From Octopus sinensis (Eukaryota), in the NCBI RefSeq assembly GCF_006345805.1, contig NC_042999.1:134788001-134852000 (forward strand): a stretch of 64,000 nt of DNA, given 5' to 3'. The notes beneath the pieces are model-generated. The model saw only the letters and a list, made by a program, of their open reading frames with translations, was not told the DNA's origin and ran no database searches. The translations under genes were made by a program, and so were the position numbers. The stretch's first letter is position 1. Every line of letters starts with the position of its first letter. Shown one piece after another: positions 14,330 to 62,384 of this stretch.

Positions 14330-17300
14330 GGGGACCTTGCCACAGAGACACGAGGCAGATGGACAAACCATCAACACAAGGAAAAGGGATGGACCACGCA
14401 CCACCTGCCCCAAAGCGGAGGTTCGCAGATGTTGTGCGTGCCACAAACCGCCAGCGTGATGTTGTCGAAAGGGCAGCTGCTGAGCAGCAATCTTTTTTGT
14501 GCATGGCACAAAAGATTGTACAGCAGCTGACCTGGCTTCATCAAACCCAAGCCCGCAGGTGGGACTACTCACTATATACAAGACCACCACAGCAAACAGA
14601 CCCAGGATGGACACCGCCGGCAACAACATACACCTCACCTCGATGCTCCTACTGAACATCAGAGGGCTGCAAACACTCAGTAACAGGACAAAAATCCCGT
14701 TCTTGAGAGACTTTGTTGCATGCAATCAAGCCTTATGCATAGCACTTACGAAAACGCACCTGAAACCGGACACATACCGGAGTTACACATACCACAGTAT
14801 GTTGTACTACGGACCGACAGAAAAGAAAGGAGTCATGGAGGAGTTGCTATGTACATCCGTGAGGACCTCACACCCCAGGTCCTCTTGTCATACTCAAACT
14901 CGGTGTGTGACACACTAATTGTACATATAAGGCAACTTGATGTAGTTGTGTGTGCTACATATCGCCCTCCAGATGCCCCAAGCCATGTGGGCAAGTTTGA
15001 AGACTGCCTTATAAAAATAGAAGAAGTTCTAATCACATTAGAACAACACATAAGTGTACTTCTTATGGGAGATTTCAATCTACCCAATGTCAGATGGCCC
15101 GAGGGCCTTTCTCTCCCAGGAATGACAAGATGTGAACGAGGACAGGCGAGGTCCCTCCTGAACTCATCAACACCCTGTACATGGAGCAGGTAATACTCCA
15201 ACAACCAGGGCAGGTAACACACTGGATCTCTGCTTCACAAATGACATGGATCTCATCCATAATGTGAAAGTGACACCGACACTACTCTCGGATCACAACA
15301 TGATAGAGCTGACCATGTACGGGCCAAAAGAGAGCACGAACATGCAGCCTACAAGAAACCCTCAGAATCTTTCCAGCTTGAACTACCATAAGGCAAACTG
15401 GAAACAAATTGAGAAAGAGATCCTCAAACAAAACTGGCCTAAATGTCTCTCCTCGCCAGACATCGACGTGAAACTTCAACAATTCATGTCTGTAATGCAA
15501 GCCATATGCTACAAATGCGTCCCAGAGAGAAAGGCCACTGTACACAAGAACAAAATCCCCAGAGAGAGGAAAATTTTAATGAGACGACGCGTACAAAAAT
15601 TTCAAATCGCCTAAACAAACAGATTGAAAGCAGTGAAAAGTCCCGCCTAAAAATAAAACTGTTGGAAATTGAAAAATGTCTGCAACTCTCCCATGAAAAA
15701 GAAAGAGCAGACAAAGAAGCCTGGGCTATAGACAACATAAAATCTAACCCCAGAGCTTTCTACAGGTATGCCAAAGAAACAGCTACGGTGCACTGTAGAA
15801 TAGGGCCACTCCTTGAAAAGGATGGCACACTTACAGGAAAACCAATGAGGGTAAGTGAAATACTGAATGAGCAATTCAAGAGTTTTTCACTCCACCCCTT
15901 GGGCATCTCCAAATCACCAATCCAACTGACTTCTTTACCACTGCAGATATAAAATCAGAGGCGGCGACGATAGATTACATCGATATAAAGGAAGACGATG
16001 TAATCAAGGCTATAGATGAAATGAAAACAGACTCAGCTACTGGCCCCGATGGATTCCCGGCAATCCTCCTAAAAGCATATAAGAGAGTCCTAGCAAGACC
16101 ACTGCAGTTCCTCTTTCAGAGCTTCCTTGCAGCTGGCAAACTTCCAAGAAAACTGAAGGAAGGTAAAATATGCCCCATTCATAAAGGAGGTAGCAGAGCG
16201 GAGGCCAAGAACTACAGACCTATCTCTCTGACCTCACACATCAGCAAGGTCATGGAACGAATAGTCAGAAGGAAACTGATCACCTTCCTTGAAGAGAATG
16301 ACTTGCTGCCCGACACCCAACATGGTTTCCGACCAGGGAGAAGCTGTTTAACTCAGCTCCTACAACACTATGACTGGGTGCTGAAACGGCTACTCAACCA
16401 CTCAAATGTGGAAGTGATATATCTCGACTTTGCAAAGGCCTTTGATAAAGTCGATCATGGAATGATATGTCACAAACTGCGTGATCTCAACATAGTTGGA
16501 AAACTGGGAGAATGGCTTCATCACTTTCTGAAAGATAGAAGTCAGGTGGTAGCAGCCAATGGGGCCACTTCCATTAACACGCAAATAGTGAGCGGTGTTC
16601 CGCAGGGCACTGTTCTGGGACCACTACTGTTCATAATGGCCCTCTCAGACATGCCCTCAGCCACGCAGAGAGCCACGATCACAAGTTATGCAGATGATAC
16701 AAAAGTTTCACAGGCAATACAGAACCCTGAGGACACTAAACGCCTGCAATGTGAGCTGGACAAAATATACAAGTGGGCTGAAAAGAATAGCATGCAGTTC
16801 AATGCTGAAAAGTTTCAAGCTTTATACTATCAGCATGCAAAACTAAATGCAATACCCAATGAATACACTGGACCCGGAGGAATAGCAATGCCAGAGGCAC
16901 AATCAGTGCGTGACCTAGGTATTTACATGAGTGATGACGCAACCTTTCGTGTACATGTTGCTAAATTGGCAATGGAATGTAGACGACTGGCCGGATGGAT
17001 CCTCAGAACCTTTAGAACAAGAGAACAAGAAACCATGATGGTCCTCTGGAGGACACTTGTCCTAAGCCACTTTGACTACTGCTCTCAGATTTGGTCACCA
17101 TCCAGTGTCAAGTTGATCACAGAGCTCGAGGCGATCCAACGTAGCTACACGAAGAAGATAGCCTCTATGCAGAATGTGAGCTACTGGGAAAGACTCAAGA
17201 GATTAAAACTATATTCCTTGGAGCGTAGGCGGGAAAGATATGCCATAATATACATCTGGAAGATCCTGGAGGGACGTGTCCTAAACTTTGGCATCGAGAG

Positions 17301-17690
17301 TTACGCAAATGCCAGAACTGGGCGCCACTGCGTGGTGCCTTGGACTCCAAACTTGCCATCAAGATGTAGGACAAGATTCTGTGATAGCCTGGGCTTCCGA
17401 GGCCCACAGCTCTTCAATATCCTCCCGAAGAACCTAAGAGACCTGCATGGGGTAGATGCAGATGTCTTTAAAATGAAACTGGATCTCTTCCTGTCAGGTG
17501 TCCCAGATGAACCAACTTCCCGGCAGGAGGTGCAGATGAGGGCAGCTGCATCGAACTCTCTCATGCACCAAATGGCAGTTGCTAAAAAGCTTTCGTGAAG
17601 TAAAACCAAGTAGCAACATCAAATGGCGGTGCCCCAGCATGGCCACAGCTCATAAGCTGAAACTAGAATCAATCAATCAATCACTCAATC

Positions 17691-25269: not shown

Positions 25270-28200
25270 TGTTCCTTTCACCCTTATACATATCATTAAC
25301 CCACACGAGATACAGAAAATGCCGACAAAAAAGACACAATCACCTCCATAAACGAAGAAATACTGAAAGAACTCAAGAAAATCAACACAAATTTGTCAAC
25401 TTTTTGAACAAATTCGACTCGACACTTCAACCCAATCGAGAGAGAACAATGAAGAGAAACAGATACGAAAAATACAACCTCCGAAATTGTCGAAAACCTT
25501 GGAAACTTATGCGAAACAATTAGAACATTTTTCTCTAACAACGCTAACCAAGGACCTCCAAACGCGTCAATATATGGGATCAATACTCTAACAACATACC
25601 AAATGAAATACCACATAATACCACAATGGAACAAATCACTCAGAGATAGAAAGTTCGCCTTTTGGAAGATGATCCAAAACAACAACAAAGCGGATATATA
25701 CGAAAAATGCTCAACCGGACCCCGTTAATCCTCCCACGTAAATTCCAGTTCAAAGCTATTACAGAAGAACCTGAAACACAAAGACACCTCAGGGAGAGAA
25801 TGGCACTGGAAAAAATGAAAATGGAAATAGAACTTCTGAAATTGAGGGCCCAAACGAATGAGGATAAAATAAAATCCACCGATGAAGATATCAACGAAGA
25901 AATTCGCAAAATTACCCAAGGCCCAGATCAAGAGAAGTTCTCCAAACTATGGAAAGAGGACTGTGAAAAAGAAGAACTAAAATCTCTCCAACGCTGGGAG
26001 AAAAGCGCCACTTGGTTCTCAGACTATGAAGCCGTCTTTCAAACAGAGCACGCCTCCAACAACCCTTTCCAGAAAATAAGAAAACCAAAACAACACCCAA
26101 ACACCGATACACACCTGTCTAAAAATCGGAACCTTCACTACTATCAAAAAAAGAACACAGGACCTAACCCTAACTCTGTAAGCAGCCAGCGATACAATAT
26201 CAGGAATACCCCCACTTCAAGCAGAGAAAGGATAATAAATCAACACCCACAGCATAGACACTGCAACCTCATCCCCACCCAAAGGAGTTACCAACGAAAT
26301 CTTCGTCCCATCAACCGGTTAAACAACCATGCACAACAAACCCACACCACTTGCAATGATTACCAACGAAGGCCTCCTAGAACACCACACCCGAATATGG
26401 GATATCGGGATGCTCTCCTCAATACTGCTCCAAGAACACACACATAAATCACAACAGGAGACCCCTAATCAACAAAGAACAACTATATACTAGCTACCGT
26501 CCCAACCACCGCATTCATTTTTTAGACCCAATACGCAAACACAGAGACACAAGATAGCACCAAACAAGCAGGAGGAACCAAAAGTAAAAAAATTATTAAT
26601 CTAACTCACAAGGAACTAACAGCAAACCAAATAAACATACTTTCCAAAGGACTCAAGTTTACACCCACCCCACAACACCCCAACTACAATGAAATGAAAG
26701 AAGACATCGCAGAATTCTGCAGAAAATTAAGACTTACTGAGGAGCTATACGATAAATACAACGAGGACGAATCGTTAGCTAGAAATAGGAGTAACTACAC
26801 CCCCTCGAAAGGTAAGAATAAAACACTTGATGATTTCTGTGACCACATATCAAATTACCCATATCAACATATGCACAAACAAAAACAAAACCAAACTTCA
26901 GCAAAAAAGAATGGGCTGAGTTGAACAAATTAAAACTAGATAAAACAATAACAATCAAAGAGGCCGATAAAGGGAGTGCTGTTGTCTTAATGGATACGAC
27001 ATTTTACATAACTTTGGTACTTTCTATGCTGGAAGACACAACATACTATGAAAAGGCACAAAACTACAGTCAACAAAAAATAATGAGGGAACTAAAATCC
27101 ATATAAACCCATACAAGCAGGCTCACCGACAAAGAATATGATTATATGACCAATTTCACAAGTAACTAGCCAATTCTACGGTATACCTAAGATCCACAAA
27201 AGTGAAAAAATAAGCAACGCATGCAAGATAGCTACAGACAAAATAATTAAAGTCCCTAATCCTAATGACCTCAAATTGAGACCCATAATAGCAGGTCCCG
27301 CATGCGAAACCCACCGCCTCAGTAACTTTTTAGACACCCTGTTAAAACCACTCCTCAAACATGTCAAAAGCTATATAAGGACGACTTAGATATGCTAATC
27401 ACCTACCGAATACTATAAACAAAAACACCATACTGGTATCCTTCGATGTAGTCAACCTCTACTCCAATATCCCCCACAACCTAGGACTAGAGGCAATCCA
27501 ATTCTGGCTAGAGAATCACGCCAACGAACTACCACACCGCATCAAAAAAGAATTTGTGATAGAAGGGGTTAAATTCATCCTGGAAAATAACTTCTTCGCC
27601 TTCAATGACAACTTCTACCGACAAAAATCGGGGACTGCGATGGGTACACGAATGGCCCCCTCCTTTGCCAACCTAGTCATAGGATACCTAGAGATCAGTC
27701 TGTATCGTAAGGTTCTAGAAAGATATGGCAGCCCTTTCTCCATCTACATAGAAAACAACTGGAAGAGATATCTAGATGACTGTTTCATCCTTTGGCATAA
27801 AAATATAGAAAAACTCATAGAATTCCAGAAAATTTTAAACGGACTGGACGTAAACATCCAATTCACGATGGAATATAGCCAACAACAACTCCCCTTCCTC
27901 GATATCCTCATTAAGAAAGCTAATAATATAATAGAAACAGACATATACTATAAGCCTACAGACTCTAAGCAATATCTTCCATTCAATTCATGCCACCCCA
28001 GACACACCAGGATGAATATCCCCTTCAATCTAGCAAAAAGGATATGCACTATAGTCTCTAACGCAAACACCAGAGACACACGACTACAAGAACTAAAAGA
28101 TACCCTAATCACCAGGAACTATCCACCTTCACTTATTGACAAGTGCATTCAACGTGCCCTTCAACTTAACATCAAGGAACTGAGACATCCCAAATCAAAG

Positions 28201-28724
28201 AAAAACTTACAACCAAAAGCCTTACCATACATCTCCACACACAACCCTCTCAATAACGAAGCCTTCGACACCATCCTCCACAACCATACCCCTCCTAAAA
28301 AAAGACCACAGAATGAACACAATCCTCCAAACACACACGATCATAAAAAGCAAAAGACAGCCTAGATCCATGAAAAGTCTCTTACACAAGCCCGAATTCA
28401 CTCTTCAACACAGAAGCCGACAGTAAAAAAATGTGGAAGACCCAATTGCGGGATTGCGACTATCTAATCGAGGGTTCTGAGTTCTCCTTCAAACAGGGAC
28501 AACGGTTTACAGTGAAAAGCAACTTCACATGTGCTTCGGGAACCTAATATACTCACTAACCTGCTCCGGGTGTCAAGAGCAGTACATAGGCCAAACAAAA
28601 AATGGTTTGCGTAAACGAATGGCCCTGCACAGATCCCAGATAAAAATTCCCCAAAACAGAAAAATAGCTTTTAGCCAACACATAGATACTTGCGCCAACA
28701 AAAAAACACCAAACTTCAGAATTT

Positions 28725-46729: not shown

Positions 46730-49467
46730 TGATTGATTGATTGATTGATTCTAGTTTCAGCTTATGAGCTGTGGCCATGCTGGGGCACCGCCATTTGGTG
46801 TTGCTACTTCGTTTCACTTCATGAAGGCTTTCTAGCAACTGCTATTTGGTGCATGAGAGAGTTCGATGCAGCTGCCCTCATCTGCCCCTCCTGCCGTGAA
46901 GTTGGTTCATCTGGGACACCTGACAGGAAGAGATCCAGCTTCATTTTAAAGACCTCTGTATCCACCCCATGCAGGTCTCTCAGGTTCTTCGGGAGGATAT
47001 TGAAGAGCTGTGGGCCTCGGAAGCCCAGGCTATCACAGAATCTTGTCCTACATCTTGATGGCAAGTTTGGAGTCCAAGGCACCACGCAGTGGCGCCCAGT
47101 TCTGGCATTTGCGTAACTCTCGATGCCAAAGTTCAGGACACTTCCCTCTAGGATCTTCCAGATGTATATTATGGCATATCTTTCCCGCCTACGCTCCAGG
47201 GAATATAATTTTAATCTCTTGAGTCTTTCCCAGTAGCTTACATTCTGCATAGAGGCTATCTTCTTCGTGTAGCTACGTTGGATCGCCTCGAGCTCTGTGA
47301 TCAACTTGACACTGGATGGTGACCATAACTGAGAGCAGTAGTCAAAGTGGCTTAGGACAAGTGTCCTCCAGAGGACCATCATGGTTTCTTGTTCTCTTGT
47401 TCTAAAGGTTCTGAGGATCCATCCGGCCAGTCGTCTACATTTCATTGCCAATTTAGCAACATGTACACGAAAGGTTGCGTCATCACTCATGTAAATACCT
47501 AGGTCACGCACTGATTGTGCCTCTGGGATTGCTATTCCTCCGGGTCCAGTGTATTCATTGGGTATTGCATTTAGTTTTGCATGCTAATAGTATAGAGCTT
47601 GAAACTTTTCAGCATTAAACTGCATGCTATTCTTTTCGGCCCACTTGTATATTTTGTCTAGCTCACATTGCAGGTGTTTAGTGTCCTCAGGGTTCTGTAT
47701 TGCCTGTGAAACTTTTGTATCATCTGCATAACTTGTGATCGTGGCTCTCTGCGTGGCTGAGGGCATGTCTGAGAGGGCCATTATGAACAGTAGTGGTCCC
47801 AGAAAGTGCCCTGCGGAACACCGCTCACTATTTGCGTGTTAATGGAAGTGGCCCCATTGGCCACTACCACCTGACTTCTATCTTTCAGAAAGTCATGAAG
47901 CCATTCTCCCAGTTTTCCAACTATGTTGAGATCACGCAGTTTGTGACATATCATTCCATGATCGACTTTATCAAAGGCCTTTGCAAAGTCGAGATATATC
48001 ACTTCCACATTTGAGTGGTTGAGCAGCCGTTTCAGCACCCAGTCATAGTGTTGTAGGAGCTGAGTTAAACAGCTTCTCCCTGGTCGGAAACCATGTTGGG
48101 TGTCGGGCAGCAAGTCATTTTCTTCAAGGAAGGTGATCAGCTTCCTTCTGACTATTCGTTCCATGACCTTGCTGATGTGTGAGGTCAGAGAGATAGGTCT
48201 ATAGTTCTTGGCTTCCGCTCTGCTACCTCCTTTATGAATGGGGCATATTTTACCTTCCTTCAGTTTTCTTGGAAGTTTGCCAGCCGCAAGGAAGCTCTGA
48301 AAGAGGAACTGCAGTGGTCTTGCTAGGACTCTCTTACATGCTTTTAGGAGGATTGCCGGGAATCCATCGGGGCCAGTAGCTGAGTCTGTTTTCATTTCAT
48401 CTATAGCCTTGATTACATCGTCTTCCTTTATATCGATGTAATCTATCGTCGCCGCCTCTGATTTTATATCTGCAGTGGTAAAGAAGTCAGTTGGATTGGT
48501 GATTTGGAGATGCCCAAGGGGTGGAGTGAAAACACTCTTGAATTGCTCATTCAGTATTTCACTTACCCTCATTGGTTTTCCTGTAAGTGTGCCATCCTTT
48601 TCGTAGCTGTTTCTTTGGCATACCTGTAGAAAGCTCTGGGGTTAGATTTTATGTTGTCTATAGCCCAGGCTTCTTTGTCTGCTCTTTCCTTTTCATGGGA
48701 GAGTTGCAGACATTTTTCGATTTCCAACAGTTTTATTTTTAGGCGGGACTTTTCACTGCTTTCAATCTGTTTGTTTAGGCGATTTGAAAATTTTGTACGC
48801 CGTCTCATTAGAATTTTCCTCTCTCTGGGATTTTGTTCTTGTGTACAGTGGCCTTTCTCTCTGGGACACATTTGTAGCATATGGCTTGCATTACAGACAT
48901 GAATTGTTGAAGTTTCACGTCGATGTCTGGCGACGAGAGACATTTAGGCCAGTTTTGTTTGAGGATCTCTTTCTCAATTTGTTTCCAGTTTGCCTTATGG
49001 TAGGTCAAGCTGGAAGATTCTGGGGGTTTCTTGTAGGCTGCATGTCCGTGCTCTCTTTTGGCCCGTACATGGTCAGCTCTATCATGTTGTGATCCGAGAG
49101 TAGTGTCGGTGTCACTTTCACATTATGGATGAGATCCATGTCCATTTGTGAAGCAGAGATCCAGTGTGTTACCTGCCCTGGTTGGTTGGAGTATTACCTG
49201 CTCCATGTACAGGGTGTTGATGAGGTTCAGGAGGGACCTCGCCTGTCCTCGTTCACATCTTGTCATTCCTGGGAGAGAAAGGCCCTCGGGCCATCTGACA
49301 TTTGGCAGATGAAGTCTTCCATAAGAAGTACACTTATGTGTTGTTCTAATGTGGTTAGAACTTCTATTTTTATAAGGCAGTCTTCAAACTTGCCCACATG
49401 GCTTGGGGCATCTGGAGGACACACAACTGGAGCGATATGTAGCACACACAACTACATCAAGTTGCCT
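46730..49467 (-). mobile_element. CR1-like LINE family A, copy 3 (5'-truncated within APE)
   Basis: ORFs 47781-48572 and 46819-47511 match copy 1; (GATT)n tail at ~46730-46750; ~30-bp internal deletion near 48600. Confidence 0.93.
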
Positions 49468-54644: not shown

Positions 54645-54980
54645 ATGAATCGTCTGTACTTTGCATTCATTGTACTGCTCAATATTGTCTATGCGAGTCC
54701 GCAGTCAGGAAGATTTGTTCAGGATTGTTATAATAAACTGTGCGATTCTAACAACCAGCAGCCTAAACAAAGTATCCACCGATTGCAGTATTGCGTTTAT
54801 AAATTGCAACTCACTAAGCCATGTTTTAAATGGCCAACAAAGAATAAATATTCTGAAAGACCGCCTCCGTCAAGCTGGAGAACTCCTCAAGCGCCAAGAA
54901 TAAGGAAGGAATATAGGTTGCTCAGTGAACGTGAAAGATATGATTTCCATCGTAGTGTTTATCTTTTAAAACGAGATACG
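54645..54980 (+). CDS. Tyrosinase-like (type-3 copper) gene, coding exon 1: signal peptide and N-terminal region
   Basis: ATG at 54645 just after a ttttcAG acceptor (54641-2). Hydrophobic N-terminus MNRLYFAFIVLLNIVYA. Motif RIRKEYRLLSERERYDFHRSVYLLKRDT is typical of tyrosinase N-termini. Ends at a phase-0 donor acg|GTAAGA; 336 nt = 112 codons. Confidence 0.9.
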
Positions 54981-55014
54981 GTAAGAATATTTTGTTGCAT
55001 ATTTTGTTGTGTGT

Positions 55015-55022
55015 GACTGTGT

Positions 55023-55090
<68 letters not shown>

Positions 55091-55317
55091 GTGTGTGTGT
55101 GTGTGTGCGTGTGTGTGTGTTTCACCTTCATATTTTTCACATTAACTTCATGTCTTAGAAAGAGAACTCTGAAGTGAATATATCGTATTAAAGCGGAGTT
55201 TTTATATGTGACTATAGCATTATGACTCCTTTTTACTCCAACAATCATAGCTAACAGAGATGAGCTTGTTCCAGCGAAACAGATATACATCTATGCCAAT
55301 GATTTACACCCACCCAT

Positions 55318-55356
<39 letters not shown>

Positions 55357-55456
55357 TGCATATATATATATATATATATATACATATATATACCACACAG
55401 ACACACAGATACAGAGACACGGAGACACACACACACACACATACAGATATGTGTGT

Positions 55457-55519
<63 letters not shown>

Positions 55520-55617
55520 AGTGTGTGTGCGTGTATGGTTGTTTAATATATATATATTCATATACTGTATCCCCATACCAAAGATGACATTGTTGAAGAA
55601 TCGTCAACCATAACTTG

Positions 55618-55670
<53 letters not shown>
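55015..55670. repeat. (GT)n, (CA)n and (CT)n microsatellites in tyrosinase intron 1
   Basis: Direct reading. Confidence 0.95.
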
Positions 55671-55674
<4 letters not shown>

Positions 55675-55845
55675 CTTTAAAAAGAATCAGTGTCCTGGTC
55701 AAAGAAAAAGTGAAATATATTTGATGTGAAGGGAAAATATCAAAATCAAAGTAACTACAAAAATACATCATATATACTTTCGAATAAACCTCAATGAACG
55801 TTAGTTGCGCCCCAATCATTATTTTTCTTATTGTTTCACTTACAG

Positions 55846-55958
55846 AGACTGTCACCAAATGTATACGATGCCACCGCCTTCCTGCACATTGGTGATACTG
55901 CAAGAAATGCCCACGGTGGACCTTCATTTCTTCTCTGGCACAGAATCTATTTGAAAAT
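55846..55958 (+). CDS. Tyrosinase-like gene, coding exon 2: CuA site
   Basis: ttacAG|...aaaat|GTAAGC. Translates RLSPNVYDATAFLHIGDTARNAHGGPSFLLWHRIYLK, containing the three CuA histidines (H, AHGGP, WHR). 113 nt, phases 0/2, in frame with both neighbouring exons. Not in the ORF track. Confidence 0.92.
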
Positions 55959-56918
55959 GTAAGCCATGCAATCAAACATTACTTTCCATTTCTTTCTTTG
56001 TTTTCTCTCTTTCTTTATTTATTTATTTGTTTTCTTCTTCTTTTGCGTTTTTTTCTTGCTTTTCTTTTACTTTGCTATATTCTTCCATTCTCTGTCTTGT
56101 CCTTGAGTTGTTTTGTTTTACGGATATTTTATTTTATTATTTTCGTACACTTAGTTTTCTTTCTTTTCTATTGTATTCTTTACCGATGTTTCCCTTTTTG
56201 TCTGAGTTCTCTATCATTAATTTCAACCACGCAAGTCGAAAAGGAAGCCTCTATGTAATTGCTGGACGTACACGAAATATTACCCAATTCTCCCTCAAAA
56301 AAACACCTACTGTTTTATTTTTTATAGAAAACAAAAGATGATAAATTCGAGCATGTATGATTAGATATAATTTATGAAAATAAAGTGGGATAGCATTGAA
56401 AATGCTTTTATTCAAGAAAACCATTCTCTATGTCTAACATTAAGGCAAAACTCTGTAAAGATTTATTACAGTATGATATGTCATCATTCTTTTGCTCACT
56501 GGCTTGGCTACTATAGCCTACCGCAATTCGTTATGTATTACTCCAAAAACAAATTTCGTAGCCTCCGAATTCACGTAATCCATCCTGGTTTACCAATTTT
56601 CCACTCTATTTCCCCAAACTCCGCCACATCTCAATCTTCCTTACAAACTACCTATTAATATTTCGCATTTCACCGACGAAGGTATTCTGCCTGAAACGTT
56701 AAAATTGCTGCTGATAACAAAATGATTTCTTCTACTTCGCGAAATGTTTTAGAAATAAATGTTTTTCTATTCTTTAGTTTAAGAGTAATAGATCTGAAAA
56801 TATTATGCAGTGCTCATCATTTATATTTTGAAGTAAGTAATGGACGGATAGGTTGATATCTTGAATAGTTATTTAGATACAAGAATTAGTTATGCCACTT
56901 AGCTGTATATATTTAGAA

Positions 56919-58207
56919 CTAGGTGGTATCAAAAAGTTCCAAGATTAGTTCTGTAGGCGCCAACTGATGGCAGGATGGCAGAACACGGTTGCGTGCACAG
57001 TGAGAGCTAGCAGTGACTTTCATGAGGCAGTGTGCCGAGTGACATGACTGTGTTTACTTTGCAAGTTGTAGAATTTATTCTTCTGTGATCACGTGTATGC
57101 TGTAGTCAGCGATTTTGTCATGGACAGGAAGTTGGAACCAGGAGCCAACATGAAATTTTGCGTTAAACTTGGGAAGTCCGCTACAGAGACATTCAGCATG
57201 CTTCGGCAACCTTACGGCTACGAGGCAATGGGCCGTACGCAAAGATTCGAGTGACGCGAGCGCTTCAAAAGCGGGAAAATATCACTGGAAAACGATGAGC
57301 GATCTGGAAGATCTGTCACGAGCGTCGACCCAGAAATGTGGAGAAAATTCATTAGCTTGTGCTTGAGGATCGTCTGAAGACAGTCAACGATATTGCTGAT
57401 GTTGTTGGCCTGTGGTATGCGTCCGTGCAGGCAATCCTAACATCTGAATTGAACATGCAGCGTGTCTCTGCCAAGTCTGTGTACCGTCTGCTGATCACTG
57501 CGCAGAAAGGACATCACTTCGAAGTCTGTCAGGATCTCCGCCAGTGCACCGCTGATGACCTATCCTTCATGTCAAGGGTCATCACCGGTGACGAGAGTTG
57601 GGTCTACGGGTGCATCCCTAAGTAAACGCGGCAGTCGCCGCGATGGAGCAGCCCTTCATATCCACGACCGAAGGCTCGACAGAGCCGAAGCTCAGTTAAG
57701 AACATGCTCATCGTTTTTTTTCTTGTTTTTTTTTTACATCCGTGCTATTGTGCATCGAGAATTCGTCCCACAGGGCCAGACCGTCAATCGAGAGTTTCAC
57801 TGCGGCGTTTTGAAGCGGTTGAGGGAGAACATTTGACGAAAGCGACGGATTTGTGGAGTTCGAAGAACTGGATTTTTCGTCCGAAACAGCGTGGTATCGC
57901 TTCCGCACCCGCCCTATTCGCCAGATTTAGCACCAGCAGACTTCCATCTTTTCTCCAAAATGAAAAGACAGTCCAAAGGTTGCCGTTTTAACACCGTTGT
58001 TGAGATCCAGAGCGGATGGCAGAAGCTCTTCGACTCACTTACGGAAAACGACTTCCAGGCCGGATTACAAAAGTGATAGGAAAGCTAGGACCGATGTATT
58101 TCTGCGCAAGTGACTATTTCGAAGGAGATGATGTTAAAACTTAAGTAAATAAGTTATTTTTTTATTAAACATAATTAGTCGTCCGTGAACTTTTTGATAC
58201 TACCTCG
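56919..58207 (+). mobile_element. Full-length (~1.29 kb) degenerate mariner (DD34D) in tyrosinase intron 2
   Basis: TIRs (C)GAGGT(A/G)GTATCAAAAAGTTC. KFCVKLGKSATET, TGDESWVYG, HPPYSPDLAPADF; many frameshifts. Confidence 0.88.
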
Positions 58208-58441
58208 TAATCTAAGTAAATTCGACTGTTGAGAGCTAGAAATCTCAGAGTACGAGAATCTCAACCGTTAATCCTTGCTTGCCAAGAGACATCAGTATAC
58301 TAAAAATTTAATCAAGTCCAGTGTTCGAACATTTTCTAAGAAATATAGTTACTCGCTCGATTAAATATTGATCGATAAATGTAAATATGCATTGAAATAT
58401 ATTTTCTACGTATTAAATTGAGTTTACATTTTTTATTTTAG

Positions 58442-59931
58442 GATGGAAGATGCTCTTCGTGAAAAAGTACCAGGTGTAACAATTCCATTTTGGGATCCAA
58501 CTCTTGACAGTCATCTTTCTAATCCTCGAGATTCCACTATGTGGTCAGATGAGTTAATGGGAACTATCAATGGTTTCGTCACTAAAGGGGCGTTTGCTAA
58601 CTGGAAAACACCAGCTGGTACTCTAATAAGGAACGGGGGTTTCATTACAAGGTTACCGACAAGTAGTAACATCGAAGATGTTCTCACTCGAACGAAACTC
58701 GAAGAGATCTCTGAACCTAATGCGCAAGAACGATATAACTTGGAATTCCTGCATAATTCTATGCATGTTGTTATTGGAGGTCACATGGGTTCGGTACCAT
58801 CATCACCCATGGACCCAATTTTCTGGCTAGTCCACAGTTACATAGAACTTGTCAACGCGCGTTTCAATGAAAACCAAAGGCGACACAACGTTAATCCCGC
58901 AACAGATTATCCTTCGGATTATGGTTTAAATGTTTACGCTCCCAATCAAAGTATTGGTCTTATGAATTTAACCGTTTTAGAGGCATTAAGAGAAACTGAA
59001 AGTTACACTAATATTTACAAATATGACTATAGTTACTTGGGAAACTGTGCTCTCAATCCAAATTTATGTAATTCTCCATACCTAACCTGCAATAATGGTA
59101 GATGCGAGTCGAAATCTAAAAACTCAACTCGTTGCAGTACTTTAATTCCCTATCAGAATATGTTTTGTATCAACCGTAGATGCGATGTAGATGAATGGGC
59201 ATTTATTCCGGTTGAAATTATTTACGAACGACCTTTCGACACGATGAAATTTGGAAATTTTCCTATTAAAAATGGTCTGCCGAATTTGCTGAATGATCTG
59301 TACGATGATAATCAACCCCTAAATTCCTCGTCCGGTAACTCAACTGGAAATAATTGTCAAAACAGTAAGTGCTGTGGTCCAGCAGGAAGACTCAACGTGC
59401 AAGCTAGTGGTATAAATTATTTTGGAACCTATCAAGAAATGGTGGTACTTGACCGTAGATTAGCTGTATCATCGGATATCACCTATATCGGTATCAGAAA
59501 CCCCGAAAGAAACGCCAGTGTAGTTTTTATTACAGCTTCAGAACAATGTGGAAGAATATGTCGTCCTTCTTGTTTAGTGCCGGGTTCAAATCCACCGAGA
59601 TACACACCATGTATAGGACTGTTGAACGTAACACGTAACAATGCTACTATGTACGGTAAAACACTCGCAGAAGCTTACATGAAAGTGTGGGATTATAGAA
59701 ACCAGATACGACCGAAACTGAGACATGAAAATATTCCGATAGTGTTCCATTGTGATGACAGCCGGTGGCCATTTAACAACAACACCAATACAACAACAAC
59801 TGCATCACCGTCGACAAGAGCAACGACTACAACAGCGACAACAACAACGACAACAACAACAACCACAACACTATATACCACTGCATCTACAACAACACGT
59901 GTGTATTGGCCAATTAGACCGTCACCTAAAA
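58442..59931 (+). CDS. Tyrosinase-like gene, coding exon 3: CuB site, Cys-rich C-terminal region, Thr-rich linker
   Basis: ttttAG|G ATG GAA. Contains MEDALR...IPFWDPTLD, CuB LHNSMHVVIGGHM...DPIFWLVH, a Cys-rich region and an (ACA)n-encoded poly-Thr tract (~59770-59900). Ends at a consensus phase-1 donor aaaa|GTAAGT (59932). Confidence 0.93.
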
Positions 59932-60363
59932 GTAAGTAATAATGGACTTCGTTATCGTCTGTAATTGTCAGCATCTGCTCTTGTTACGGGGTTGAGGGTA
60001 GGCCAGTGTGGATCATATTAACATTTGTGTCTTTGTAAGTGTAGTTCTAATGTGCATATTGAGAGTAGTTGTGTAATACATATATAAAAATAGTTCTTGA
60101 TTGTTTTGTACTATTTCAATATTTTGTTGCTCTTCAAGCCAAGAAAATATTCGACAATTTCTCATACAGGCATTAAGCTCACCAGTAGGTGTGGGAAATA
60201 GCATCTTTTGGGGAGAATTTCTTTTAATTATATAACAACGGTAAATGCAGTGTGAAAATAAGAATCGTTTCAAATTTTGAATGAAGTAGTTACTCGATTA
60301 TATTGACCACAGTATTACACTGCTACTTATGAAGATATATAAGATAGAGCTCAATTCGGCAAA

Positions 60364-60399
<36 letters not shown>

Positions 60400-60733
60400 A
60401 AAGTCGCGTCGTCTTGTGGTTTGGGTGTTGCCAGAACATGGGTTCGATTCCCGGATCGGATGGTGCGTTGTGTTCTTAAGCAAAACACTTCATCTCATGT
60501 CGCTTTGCGGCTGGAAGTGACAAAATCGTTGGTGCATCGGCATAAATGCTTTACGGTATATTCTGAGTTCAAATCCCACCTGCGTGGAGAAAGTAATAAG
60601 AAACCACACCAGTCCGCATCCCAAGCCTAGTCATGGTAGCTGAAGTTCCAGTAATCAACTTAACAGCAGCAAGGGACGATACGGTTCTTCACGGACCATA
60701 TAGAGAGTGTTGAAGAAGCTCATATGCACAAGA

Positions 60734-60961
60734 CCGGCGAGCTGGCAGAAACGTTAGCACGTCGGGCGAAATGCGTAACCGTATTTCGTCTGCCGTTACG
60801 TTCTGAGTTCAAATTCCGCCAAGGTCGACTTTGCCTTTCATCCTTTCGGGGTCGATAAATTAAGTACCAGTTACGCACTGGGGTCGATATAATCGACTTA
60901 ATCCGTTTGTCTGTCCTTGTTTGTCCCCTCTGTGTTTAGCCCCTTGTGGGTAGTAAAGAAA
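60734..60961 (+). mobile_element. SINE-B variant in tyrosinase intron 3
   Basis: Monomer of the unit arrayed at 8652-9700. Confidence 0.88.
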
Positions 60962-61006
60962 TATATATATATACATGTATTGATGCATATATATATATAT
61001 GCATAT

Positions 61007-61090
<84 letters not shown>

Positions 61091-61417
61091 GGGCCATATC
61101 TACCTACATATATATAGCTGTTAGATAATTGTCCTGATCATGGACATAATGAAGCACTAGTTACATACGGCACAACTCGCCAAACTCTCATCATTTTTCA
61201 CGGAGTATATAAGTACTGAAAAAGAGGAAATGTACCTAGGGTCATTCGGAACTTCATATATTCTTGATAAACACGACTACCAAGGCAATGTTATTTCCTT
61301 GTACCTAGCCTATAATCGCCTATTCATTCATGCAGCTCACCAAGACATTTTGCTTTGTAATGAATTTCAGTTGCTATGTTTGTCTTTTCTCCTAATGTTT
61401 TTACTTCTCTATTGCAG

Positions 61418-61611
61418 AATGCTACATCAACCAGAATTGTGCCATTGCCAAAGGATGTGACTGTATATCGATGGACAAACAGCCTTGCATACAAAAGTGT
61501 TCCCATTACGCTTTATGTGTATATGGCTCTTACATAGTATCTTCCTGTGGCTACGGTAGAAGGTATGAACCCTATTTAAGAAGATGCATCCCGGGACGTT
61601 GTCAACATTAA
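61418..61611 (+). CDS. Tyrosinase-like gene, coding exon 4: chitin-binding type-2 (peritrophin-A/CBM14-like) domain
   Basis: Polypyrimidine tract plus ttgcAG acceptor, phase 1 matching the exon 3 donor. Encodes (K)CYINQNCAIAKGCDCISMDKQPCIQKCSHYALCVYGSYIVSSCGYGRRYEPYLRRCIPGRCQH*. Cys spacing C-x13-C-x5-C-x9-C-x12-C-x4-C. AATAAA downstream at 61655 and 61995. Confidence 0.8.
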
Positions 61612-62384
61612 ATGTAAGGCTGCTGACACTCTTATAAAGCAATATTCCCAACGAAATAAAAGATGAATTTTCTTCCACGTTTGACTTTTACAGAGTAATG
61701 TTTAGAGGAGGACATTCTCCAACAGCATTACCTGAGTTCATTTCTAGCTGAATGAGCGGGACGATGGATAATGATGTGAAAGTGAATTTGGAAATGGAGA
61801 ATGAATGAACGAATGACTGAACGAATTAACGAATGAACGAACGAACGAGCGAGCGAGGGATCTCTGTGGGATCTGGTACTAGTTTTAAATAGAAACCTGT
61901 TGAACGAGTTTCTGATTTGCTTACTATTTTTTTTGTCATCATTCATTTTTCACAACATTTATTTTTTGTGTAAACACATCTAATCTAATATCTAAATAAA
62001 ATCATAATAAACTCATAAAATTTCTTCTGAGTTTTTAATTATCTTACATGGAAGTGGCGAAAGTGATAAAAAGAATTTGGAATTAAATAAAAATATTGCC
62101 TTCTGATTTCTAATCACTCATTTCGGAAATTACCCAAACAAGTTAATCAGGATTGAAGCGATAAAATATTTAGTTATTATAAACATCTGATCGACGTATT
62201 ATGTCCTGTCTATATCGTTGATACAAGACAATATTTGTATGTAGTGAAAGCATTAAACCTAAGAAAATTGTGTAATATTGGATTAAGTGTGCTAAATATT
62301 TGTTTTTGTCCCTCAAAATCAAAATTCTAAACCTGCCAAAATTGGTATCTTATTTTTGTACTTGATAAAATAACGGTTTCAAAT

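Follow-up and report, generated by a model that had tools for sequence, protein, structure and literature searches.

An octopus tyrosinase gene in a tandem cluster whose spliced terminal exon is predicted to encode a divergent CBM14-fold domain

The window analysed here is a stretch of 64,000 nt of the Octopus sinensis genome (NCBI RefSeq assembly GCF_006345805.1, contig NC_042999.1, called C3 below, positions 134,788,001 to 134,852,000 of the forward strand), and coordinates below are those of the window unless a contig is named. It contains a tyrosinase gene of four exons, which is real, expressed and already annotated. Its product is predicted to be a secreted type-3 copper tyrosinase or catechol oxidase, in which the catalytic domain is followed by a mollusc-specific, Cys-rich middle region, then by a linker rich in Thr and by a small Cys-rich tail encoded by the last exon. 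As judged from sequence profiles and structure models, this tail is a divergent CBM14-fold domain with four extra cysteines, not a database-grade member of the family. Public databases already contain both the gene and its product, and the component families are known. What appears to be new relative to the literature searched is that the tail is of the CBM14 type and that the tyrosinase–linker–CBM14 layout is common to octopods and a bivalve. No description of a tyrosinase–CBM14 fusion was found in the full-text literature searched (subscription literature being outside the scope). There, tyrosinase is treated as a single-domain protein (10.1101/2021.07.10.451900), and tyrosinase and ChtBD2/CBM_14 are given as separate conserved shell-matrix domains (PMC8700984, PMC6368272, PMC8382897). 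Here, we will describe the evidence for the gene, its tail and its relatives, and weigh what the tail might do.

The gene model was rebuilt from the window (Table 1) and yields a spliced coding sequence (CDS) of 2133 nt, i.e. 710 amino acids (aa) plus a stop codon, from four exons with phases 0/2/1. Every intron has a GT donor and an AG acceptor preceded by a pyrimidine-rich tract; the donor of exon 1 reads ACG/gtaaga, and the translation of this exon agrees with the N-terminus of an annotated protein of O. vulgaris (P0002). The N-terminus is hydrophobic, with no Cys in aa 1–20, and is signal-like by eye only. The original prediction, made from the sequence alone, had proposed this GT–AG model and had attributed the early stop of the mechanical open reading frame (ORF) to read-through of a splice donor. 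Both were reproduced: the ORF at 58443–59939 terminates in PSPKSK because it reads across the donor A/GTAAGT to a TAA 5 nt into intron 3.

Transcript evidence comes from contigs of four runs (four studies, two organism labels), guessed to be RNA and mapped onto positions 58300–61700 only; their contig depths are a crude measure. The postulated joint 59931>61418 (GT..AG, 1486 nt skipped) is present in contigs of all four runs, and the start of the contigs coincides with the acceptor of exon 3 (58442), their end or joint with 59931. Introns 2 and 3 have zero contig depth save for repeats and low-depth contigs at 59902–60221 (run X1) and at the intron 2 acceptor, so the contigs look RNA-derived. 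A contig of 2486 nt from run X4 consists of exon 3, exon 4, 233 nt past 61700 and 480 nt upstream of 58442. Exons 1 and 2 (449 nt) together with a short 5′ untranslated region (UTR) would account for the length of this unmapped 5′ part, and the whole contig is long enough to hold the CDS; the joints of exons 1 and 2 are supported by their splice sites, by the annotated protein of O. vulgaris and by the length of this contig. The last exon is spliced into the apparent main form of the mRNA. At two positions the runs differ from the genome: 59738 is A in all four and G in the genome (a synonymous difference in the third base of a Pro codon), and 61636, in the 3′ UTR, is T in three and A in the genome. 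Both look like variants of the reference individual, and neither is an A-to-G change as in RNA editing.

Table 1. Features of the tyrosinase gene, followed by reverse-transcriptase ORFs elsewhere in the window.
Feature	Coordinates	Strand	Remarks
Exon 1	54645–54980	+	336 nt, aa 1–112; start codon, hydrophobic signal-like segment (~aa 1–18), Cys-containing N-terminal region
Exon 2	55846–55958	+	113 nt, aa 113–149 + 2 nt; CuA, His126/His135/His144 at 55885–55941
Exon 3	58442–59931	+	1490 nt, aa 150–647; remaining tyrosinase domain, Cys-rich middle region, Thr-rich linker
CuB site	58752–58835	+	His254, His258, His281; Asn255 directly after first His; read from sequence
Middle region	58893–59768	+	aa 301–592; 15 Cys, 8 N-glycosylation sequons
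Thr-rich mucin-like linker	59769–59931	+	aa 593–645; 26 Thr in 53 residues
Intron 3	59932–61417	+	GT..AG, 1486 nt; read-through TAA at 59937–59939; microsatellites and highly repeated SINE-like (short interspersed nuclear element-like) elements
Exon 4	61418–61611	+	194 nt, phase 1, stop codon included; 3′ UTR runs past 61700
Predicted CBM14-fold tail domain	61420–61608	+	63 aa (aa 648–710), 10 Cys
Reverse-transcriptase ORF	16021–17598	+	PF00078, 109 bits
Reverse-transcriptase ORF	27556–28365	+	PF00078, 20 bits
Reverse-transcriptase ORF	47781–48572	-	PF00078, 63 bits

The terminal exon had been called hidden, which holds for the naive ORF track only. It is already included in the O. vulgaris protein 'TYRosinase family member (tyr-3)' (P0002; 710 aa, 99% identical, C-terminal domain included) and in the O. 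sinensis 'putative tyrosinase-like protein tyr-1 isoform X3' (P0001; 704 aa, same exons 3 and 4). The names tyr-1 and tyr-3 (NCBI, UniProt) are similarity labels and do not denote orthology. The first exon of P0001 lies at C3:134748232–134748549, ~94 kb upstream of exon 1 and inside the upstream paralogue; exon 1 of the present gene shares just 48% identity with it. From its sequence, isoform X3 looks like a read-through or chimera of the neighbour's exons 1–2 with exons 3–4 of this gene. Similarly, the O. vulgaris 'tyrosinase tyr-1' (P0003; 764 aa) contains the N-terminal half of a tyrosinase twice, without linker or tail, and looks like two tandem genes that were merged with their terminal exons missed. 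Annotation of the tyrosinase cluster is therefore error-prone.

The catalytic assignment is straightforward. The Pfam Tyrosinase family (PF00264) matches both exon pieces above its cut-off of 22.6 bits (26.9 bits for the exon 2 piece and 67.5 bits for that of exon 3) and reaches 108.1 bits in the full-length O. vulgaris orthologue. All six copper-ligand histidines of the intact site claimed by the original prediction are found in the spliced model, with CuA formed by H126/H135/H144 (H-x8-H-x8-H) and CuB by H254/H258/H281 (H-x3-H-x22-H). An alignment of mollusc proteins shows that the octopod and most bivalve relatives retain the copper-binding histidines and that most columns around CuB are conserved. 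No Pfam family covers the middle region, which can be aligned with bivalve tyrosinases (those of Mya and Mactra, and one further transcript); an ESM Atlas search with it returned a cluster of mollusc tyrosinases (0.78) as its sole result. An AlphaFold2 model of the full-length protein, built from 8 sequences, has a mean predicted local distance difference test (pLDDT) score of 48, and both the middle region and the linker score under 50, so the fold of aa 301–592 and any capping of the active site are unreadable from the model. The expected poly-Thr linker is present (Table 1) and is probably O-glycosylated, as judged from its composition. It is encoded by an ACA/ACG-rich repeat in exon 3 (59800–59875), which was excluded as repetitive in the contig mapping. 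The O. vulgaris linker differs by two residues, and the length of the linker may be polymorphic.

The tail itself contains ten cysteines in the pattern C-x5-C-x5-C-x-C-x7-C-x3-C-x5-C-x9-C-x12-C-x4-C, all of them invariant in seven copies. The six-Cys register of CBM14 domains is C-x(11–24)-C-x5-C-x(9–14)-C-x(12–16)-C-x(5–9)-C (ranges partly from the EHEP pattern), and a canonical-type register can be read in the tail as C13-x13-C27-x5-C33-x9-C43-x12-C56-x4-C61, in which every spacer but the last (x4) lies within these ranges, leaving C1, C7, C15 and C23 as extra invariant cysteines. The spacing C-x13-C-x5-C-x9-C-x12-C-x4-C noted in the original prediction is therefore present in exon 4, but only as a subset of its ten cysteines. 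Aromatic positions typical of CBM14 (Tyr30 and Tyr/Phe49 of the domain) are retained.

The kinship with peritrophin-A/CBM14 that was proposed alongside this spacing holds by profile and fold evidence, and not by a single-sequence Pfam match: the tail alone scores 18.6 bits against CBM_14 (PF01607; E 0.002), under the gathering cut-off of 22.1. Because of this sub-threshold score, databases list only PF00264 for these proteins. All seven tail copies match CBM_14 below or near the cut-off (best E 4e-4), and P0063, an orphan single-domain homologue, scores 24.1 bits. A profile built from the seven tails, searched against PDB sequences, found EHEP of Aplysia first (E 2e-7), followed by Blo t 12 and the CBM14 domains of chitinases. 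Against 1.84 billion representative proteins, the same profile gave 399 matches at E <= 0.001; the ten that were sampled are all CBM_14 proteins, nine of them multi-repeat proteins at 149–540 bits and the other P0063. An hhalign comparison of the tail with 12 canonical CBM14 domains gave a probability of 96.4% (E 1.1e-9) and aligned C27/C33/C43/C56 of the tail to canonical cysteines 2–5.

Structure models point to the same family. The AlphaFold2 model of the tail has a pLDDT of 87, and its first 13 Foldseek matches are all CBM14-type (EHEP, chitotriosidase, Blo t 12, Avr4, tachycitin and Der p 23). A VIA-align search over 48,161 chains returned 14 that reach Z >= 2, of which the top eight are CBM14-type (Z 6.7–3.5); individual fold scores are modest since the domain is small. 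Other families fared worse. CBM_19 matches are weaker (three of the seven copies, 14.3 bits here) and CBM19 structures are absent from the fold matches, while matches to DAN/NBL1 cystine-knot proteins (E 0.25–0.6) and the EGF-like and antifungal-protein rows of the fold search (Foldseek probability <= 0.2) were rejected as Cys-rich chance matches.

The gene is not alone in carrying this tail. Six tandem copies of the tail exon lie on C3 at 134.76–134.94 Mb, all with a phase-1 AG acceptor and an open frame. A search of the genome with PF00264 places a tyrosinase exon 2.5–3.4 kb upstream of five of the six tail exons; tyrosinase loci elsewhere in the genome have no tail exon nearby. The octopus has at least five, and probably six, tandem genes with the tail. 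The ratio of non-synonymous to synonymous substitution (dN/dS) of the tail exon is 0.2–0.45 where computable, and the tail is under purifying selection. Taken together, the recurrence of an exon with a conserved acceptor, the spliced joint and the dN/dS values make a pattern beyond chance. Two of the tail exons, L003 and L004 (C3:134917982 and 134934917), lie 17 kb apart and have identical peptides and identical upstream intron ends, reflecting either a very recent duplication, gene conversion or an assembly duplication. Gene conversion has been reported in the tyrosinase cluster of Argonauta (PMC9635652).

Outside Octopus, the survey is thin: it covers 11 relatives retrieved by an alignment-based word search and implies no absence from squid, Nautilus or gastropods, and a word-index search with the tail alone returned only the gene's own cluster. 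Within this sample, the survey across molluscs called for by the original prediction places the architecture in two further species. Two proteins of Argonauta hians carry the same tail (Argonauta relatives are ~60% identical), and a 919-aa tyrosinase of the clam Mactra antiquata has the same ten-Cys tail with two spacers one residue longer (hhalign 95%, E 4e-8; Pfam CBM_14 18.5 bits). Since the tail is present in Argonauta and Mactra as well as in Octopus, the layout predates cephalopods. A degenerate copy of the tail is encoded by a 733-aa ORF on another contig, of 2.5 kb. The Mya arenaria model (584 aa) terminates shortly ahead of the linker, directly after a conserved C-D-x(3–5)-W-P motif; its last exon was either genuinely lost or missed in annotation.

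What does the tail do? We regard it as about evenly balanced whether the tail docks the enzyme on chitin. An analogy in layout comes from animal GH18 chitinases (human chitotriosidase, 5HBF/6SO0, and insect chitinases), which likewise consist of a catalytic domain, a Ser/Thr-rich linker and one C-terminal CBM14-fold domain; the CBM14 domain of chitotriosidase is among the fold matches of the tail. This shared layout suggests chitin anchoring with flexible reach. In contrast to these chitinases, the catalytic part of the octopus protein is a copper oxidase, and the tail has ten cysteines instead of six, a last spacer of x4 and a sub-cut-off Pfam score. By this analogy, the tail would anchor the enzyme on a chitin-based extracellular matrix, and the flexible linker would give the catalytic domain the reach to oxidise nearby tyrosine or DOPA (3,4-dihydroxyphenylalanine) side chains or free catechols, so that quinone cross-linking would take place on the scaffold and not in solution.

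Such an enzyme, making quinones at matrix proteins while held on chitin, fits the accepted role of mollusc tyrosinases in cross-linking the periostracum and matrix (PMC5105077, PMC13190495). The scaffold of shelled molluscs would be the periostracum or the chitin-containing matrix of the shell. In octopods, where the shell is absent, the targets would more likely be chitinous linings produced by arm and mantle epithelia (sucker cuticle, stylets). Argonauta argo has a tandem cluster of secreted tyrosinases that groups with shell-matrix tyrosinases (PMC9635652), and these Argonauta enzymes are highly expressed in arms and mantle (PMC9635652, 10.1101/2021.07.10.451900), which points to sucker cuticle, stylets or skin secretions. 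The beak, named as a target in the original prediction, is possible and unsupported; the sole tissue data found are those for Argonauta arms and mantle.

Several points weigh against chitin docking. The CBM_14 score stays below the cut-off (18.6 bits for the tail alone and 14.9 bits within full-length P0002), and the last Cys spacer of the tail falls short of the usual range. C-terminal proteolysis activates some type-3 copper enzymes, in which case the tail could part from the active enzyme. The two nearest solved structures are those of EHEP and Der p 23, neither of which reportedly binds chitin, and the residues that contact chitin vary from one CBM14 protein to another (PMC10619976), so the ligand is not readable from sequence or fold. 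In addition, tyrosinase was not detected in the matrix proteome of the Argonauta eggcase (10.1101/2021.07.10.451900).

Among the alternatives, the tail may bind phenolic ligands or a protein partner instead of chitin, thereby capturing or concentrating polyphenols or DOPA-rich proteins for the oxidase; we consider this rather unlikely. It draws on Aplysia kurodai EHEP (PDB 8IN3), which is molluscan, linked to phenol chemistry, the closest solved relative of the tail by profile and among its top fold matches (Foldseek rank 1–2; VIA rank 2, with Z 6.5 and a root-mean-square deviation of 1.7 over 51 residues). EHEP binds tannic acid and phlorotannin and reportedly not chitin (PMC10619976), and the enzyme attached to the octopus tail acts on phenols. 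However, EHEP has no enzyme domain, and its tannic acid pocket is formed centrally by three peritrophin-A domains jointly (PMC10619976), whereas the 710 aa of the octopus protein contain a single peritrophin-A-type domain, fused to an oxidase. Most matches of the tail profile are moreover ordinary peritrophin-type repeat proteins, and the catalytic–linker–CBM14 arrangement is that of chitinases. The retained aromatic residues are compatible with chitin and phenolic ligands alike. A broader version, in which the tail is a substrate-capturing module and molluscs as a whole employ the CBM14 fold in phenol chemistry, a use conserved between the shell-matrix tyrosinases of bivalves and the octopods without a shell, we judge unlikely.

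Alternatively, the protein might serve defence and not structure, as an enzyme that the epithelium of skin, arms and mantle releases into mucus, the tail recognising foreign chitin (of fungi, parasites or crustacean surfaces) and the oxidase making toxic quinones or melanin. A single chain would then unite a phenoloxidase with a binder resembling tachycitin. Tandem expansion, as found here, is common among defence genes. The fold matches that extend over all 63 residues of the tail include tachycitin, which binds chitin and is antimicrobial, and the Argonauta tyrosinases are epithelial. The skin-mucus proteome of O. vulgaris is enriched in proteins with a tyrosinase domain, possibly haemocyanin (PMC10138644). 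Set against this are the same architecture in a bivalve tyrosinase and the placement of the Argonauta cluster with shell-matrix tyrosinases by its authors (PMC9635652), and we hold the defence role to be quite unlikely.

It seems distinctly improbable that the middle region, linker and tail form a latency or sorting extension that is cleaved on activation, which would leave the oxidase untethered and the tail acting in secretion or as a separate chitin-binding peptide. Many type-3 copper enzymes have C-terminal extensions that are removed upon activation; in the octopus protein, the linker is exposed and no family is assigned to the middle region. Heavily O-glycosylated Thr linkers, on the other hand, usually resist proteolysis, and the purifying selection on the tail and its retention from bivalves to octopods fit a role in the mature protein, while still being compatible with cleavage. 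Finally, it is hardly credible that retention of intron 3 yields a substantial tail-less isoform ending in PSPKSK (giving soluble and anchored forms from one gene), as the original prediction had allowed given the in-frame stop at the start of the intron: a single 320-nt contig crosses the donor, in one of the four runs (59902–60221, run X1) and at a depth of 4.8 against 95 for the spliced contig there, and with an equally weak contig over the intron 2 acceptor (2.66) it looks like pre-mRNA. Given how crude the depths are, a minor isoform of this kind may exist.

The protein can be compared with further known systems. The secreted (alpha-type) molluscan tyrosinases, i.e. those of the Argonauta argo cluster and the bivalve shell matrix, belong to the same family and probably the same clade. 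They share the signal-like N-terminus, the six-His PF00264 domain, the Cys-rich middle region and the tandem array, and differ in that, as described in the literature searched, they do not combine a tyrosinase and a chitin-binding-type domain in one chain. Tachycitin (1DQC) and Avr4 (4Z4A, 6BN0), which have the CBM14 fold and additional disulfides, align over the whole tail (model residues 1–63) and, like the tail, have more than six cysteines: ten in tachycitin and eight in Avr4. They are stand-alone small proteins with 16–21% identity to the tail. Tachycitin and the fungal Avr4 both bind chitin (PMC10619976). Nematode tyrosinases (tyr-1, tyr-3) are also secreted PF00264 enzymes with an extra small Cys-rich module, which in the one nematode match is PF01549 (ShK) and not a CBM14-type tail.

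The surroundings of the gene are rich in repeats. Retroelement copies (Table 1) fill the 54 kb upstream of it, and the other long ORFs in the window have no cellular Pfam match. Intron 2 harbors a decayed mariner/Mos1-type DNA transposon (57093–58140), with short + strand ORFs interrupted by stops and a weak match to the helix-turn-helix domain of Mos1 transposase (PF17906, 19.8 bits). In intron 3, short interspersed repeats at 60400–60640 and 60694–61035 reach a summed depth of up to ~5e5 in all four runs and show numerous loose ends. They belong to a SINE-like element of very high abundance that many transcripts contain; an ARAGORN scan of these repeats found no tRNA. Long (TG)n, (TA)n and (TC)n microsatellites occupy 55010–55670 (intron 1), and 60364–60398 and 60960–61090 (intron 3).

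The advance is modest, as the gene is annotated and its parts come from known families. Standard domain annotation overlooks the tail because it lies below the Pfam cut-off, and its exon may be absent from some gene models; the number of 'single-domain' tyrosinases reported for mollusc genomes may therefore be incorrect. If the enzyme does dock on chitin, it would be of interest for cross-linked chitin materials. Studies of mollusc shells, beaks and cuticles regard tyrosinase (cross-linking) and the chitin-binding domain (scaffold attachment) as separate items of a common toolkit; here, a tyrosinase and a tail predicted to be of the chitin-binding type stand in one chain. The occurrence of this fused layout in a clam and in octopods, and in at least five tandem genes of a shell-less animal, suggests a simple mechanism, in which the enzyme would be placed on the very scaffold being hardened.

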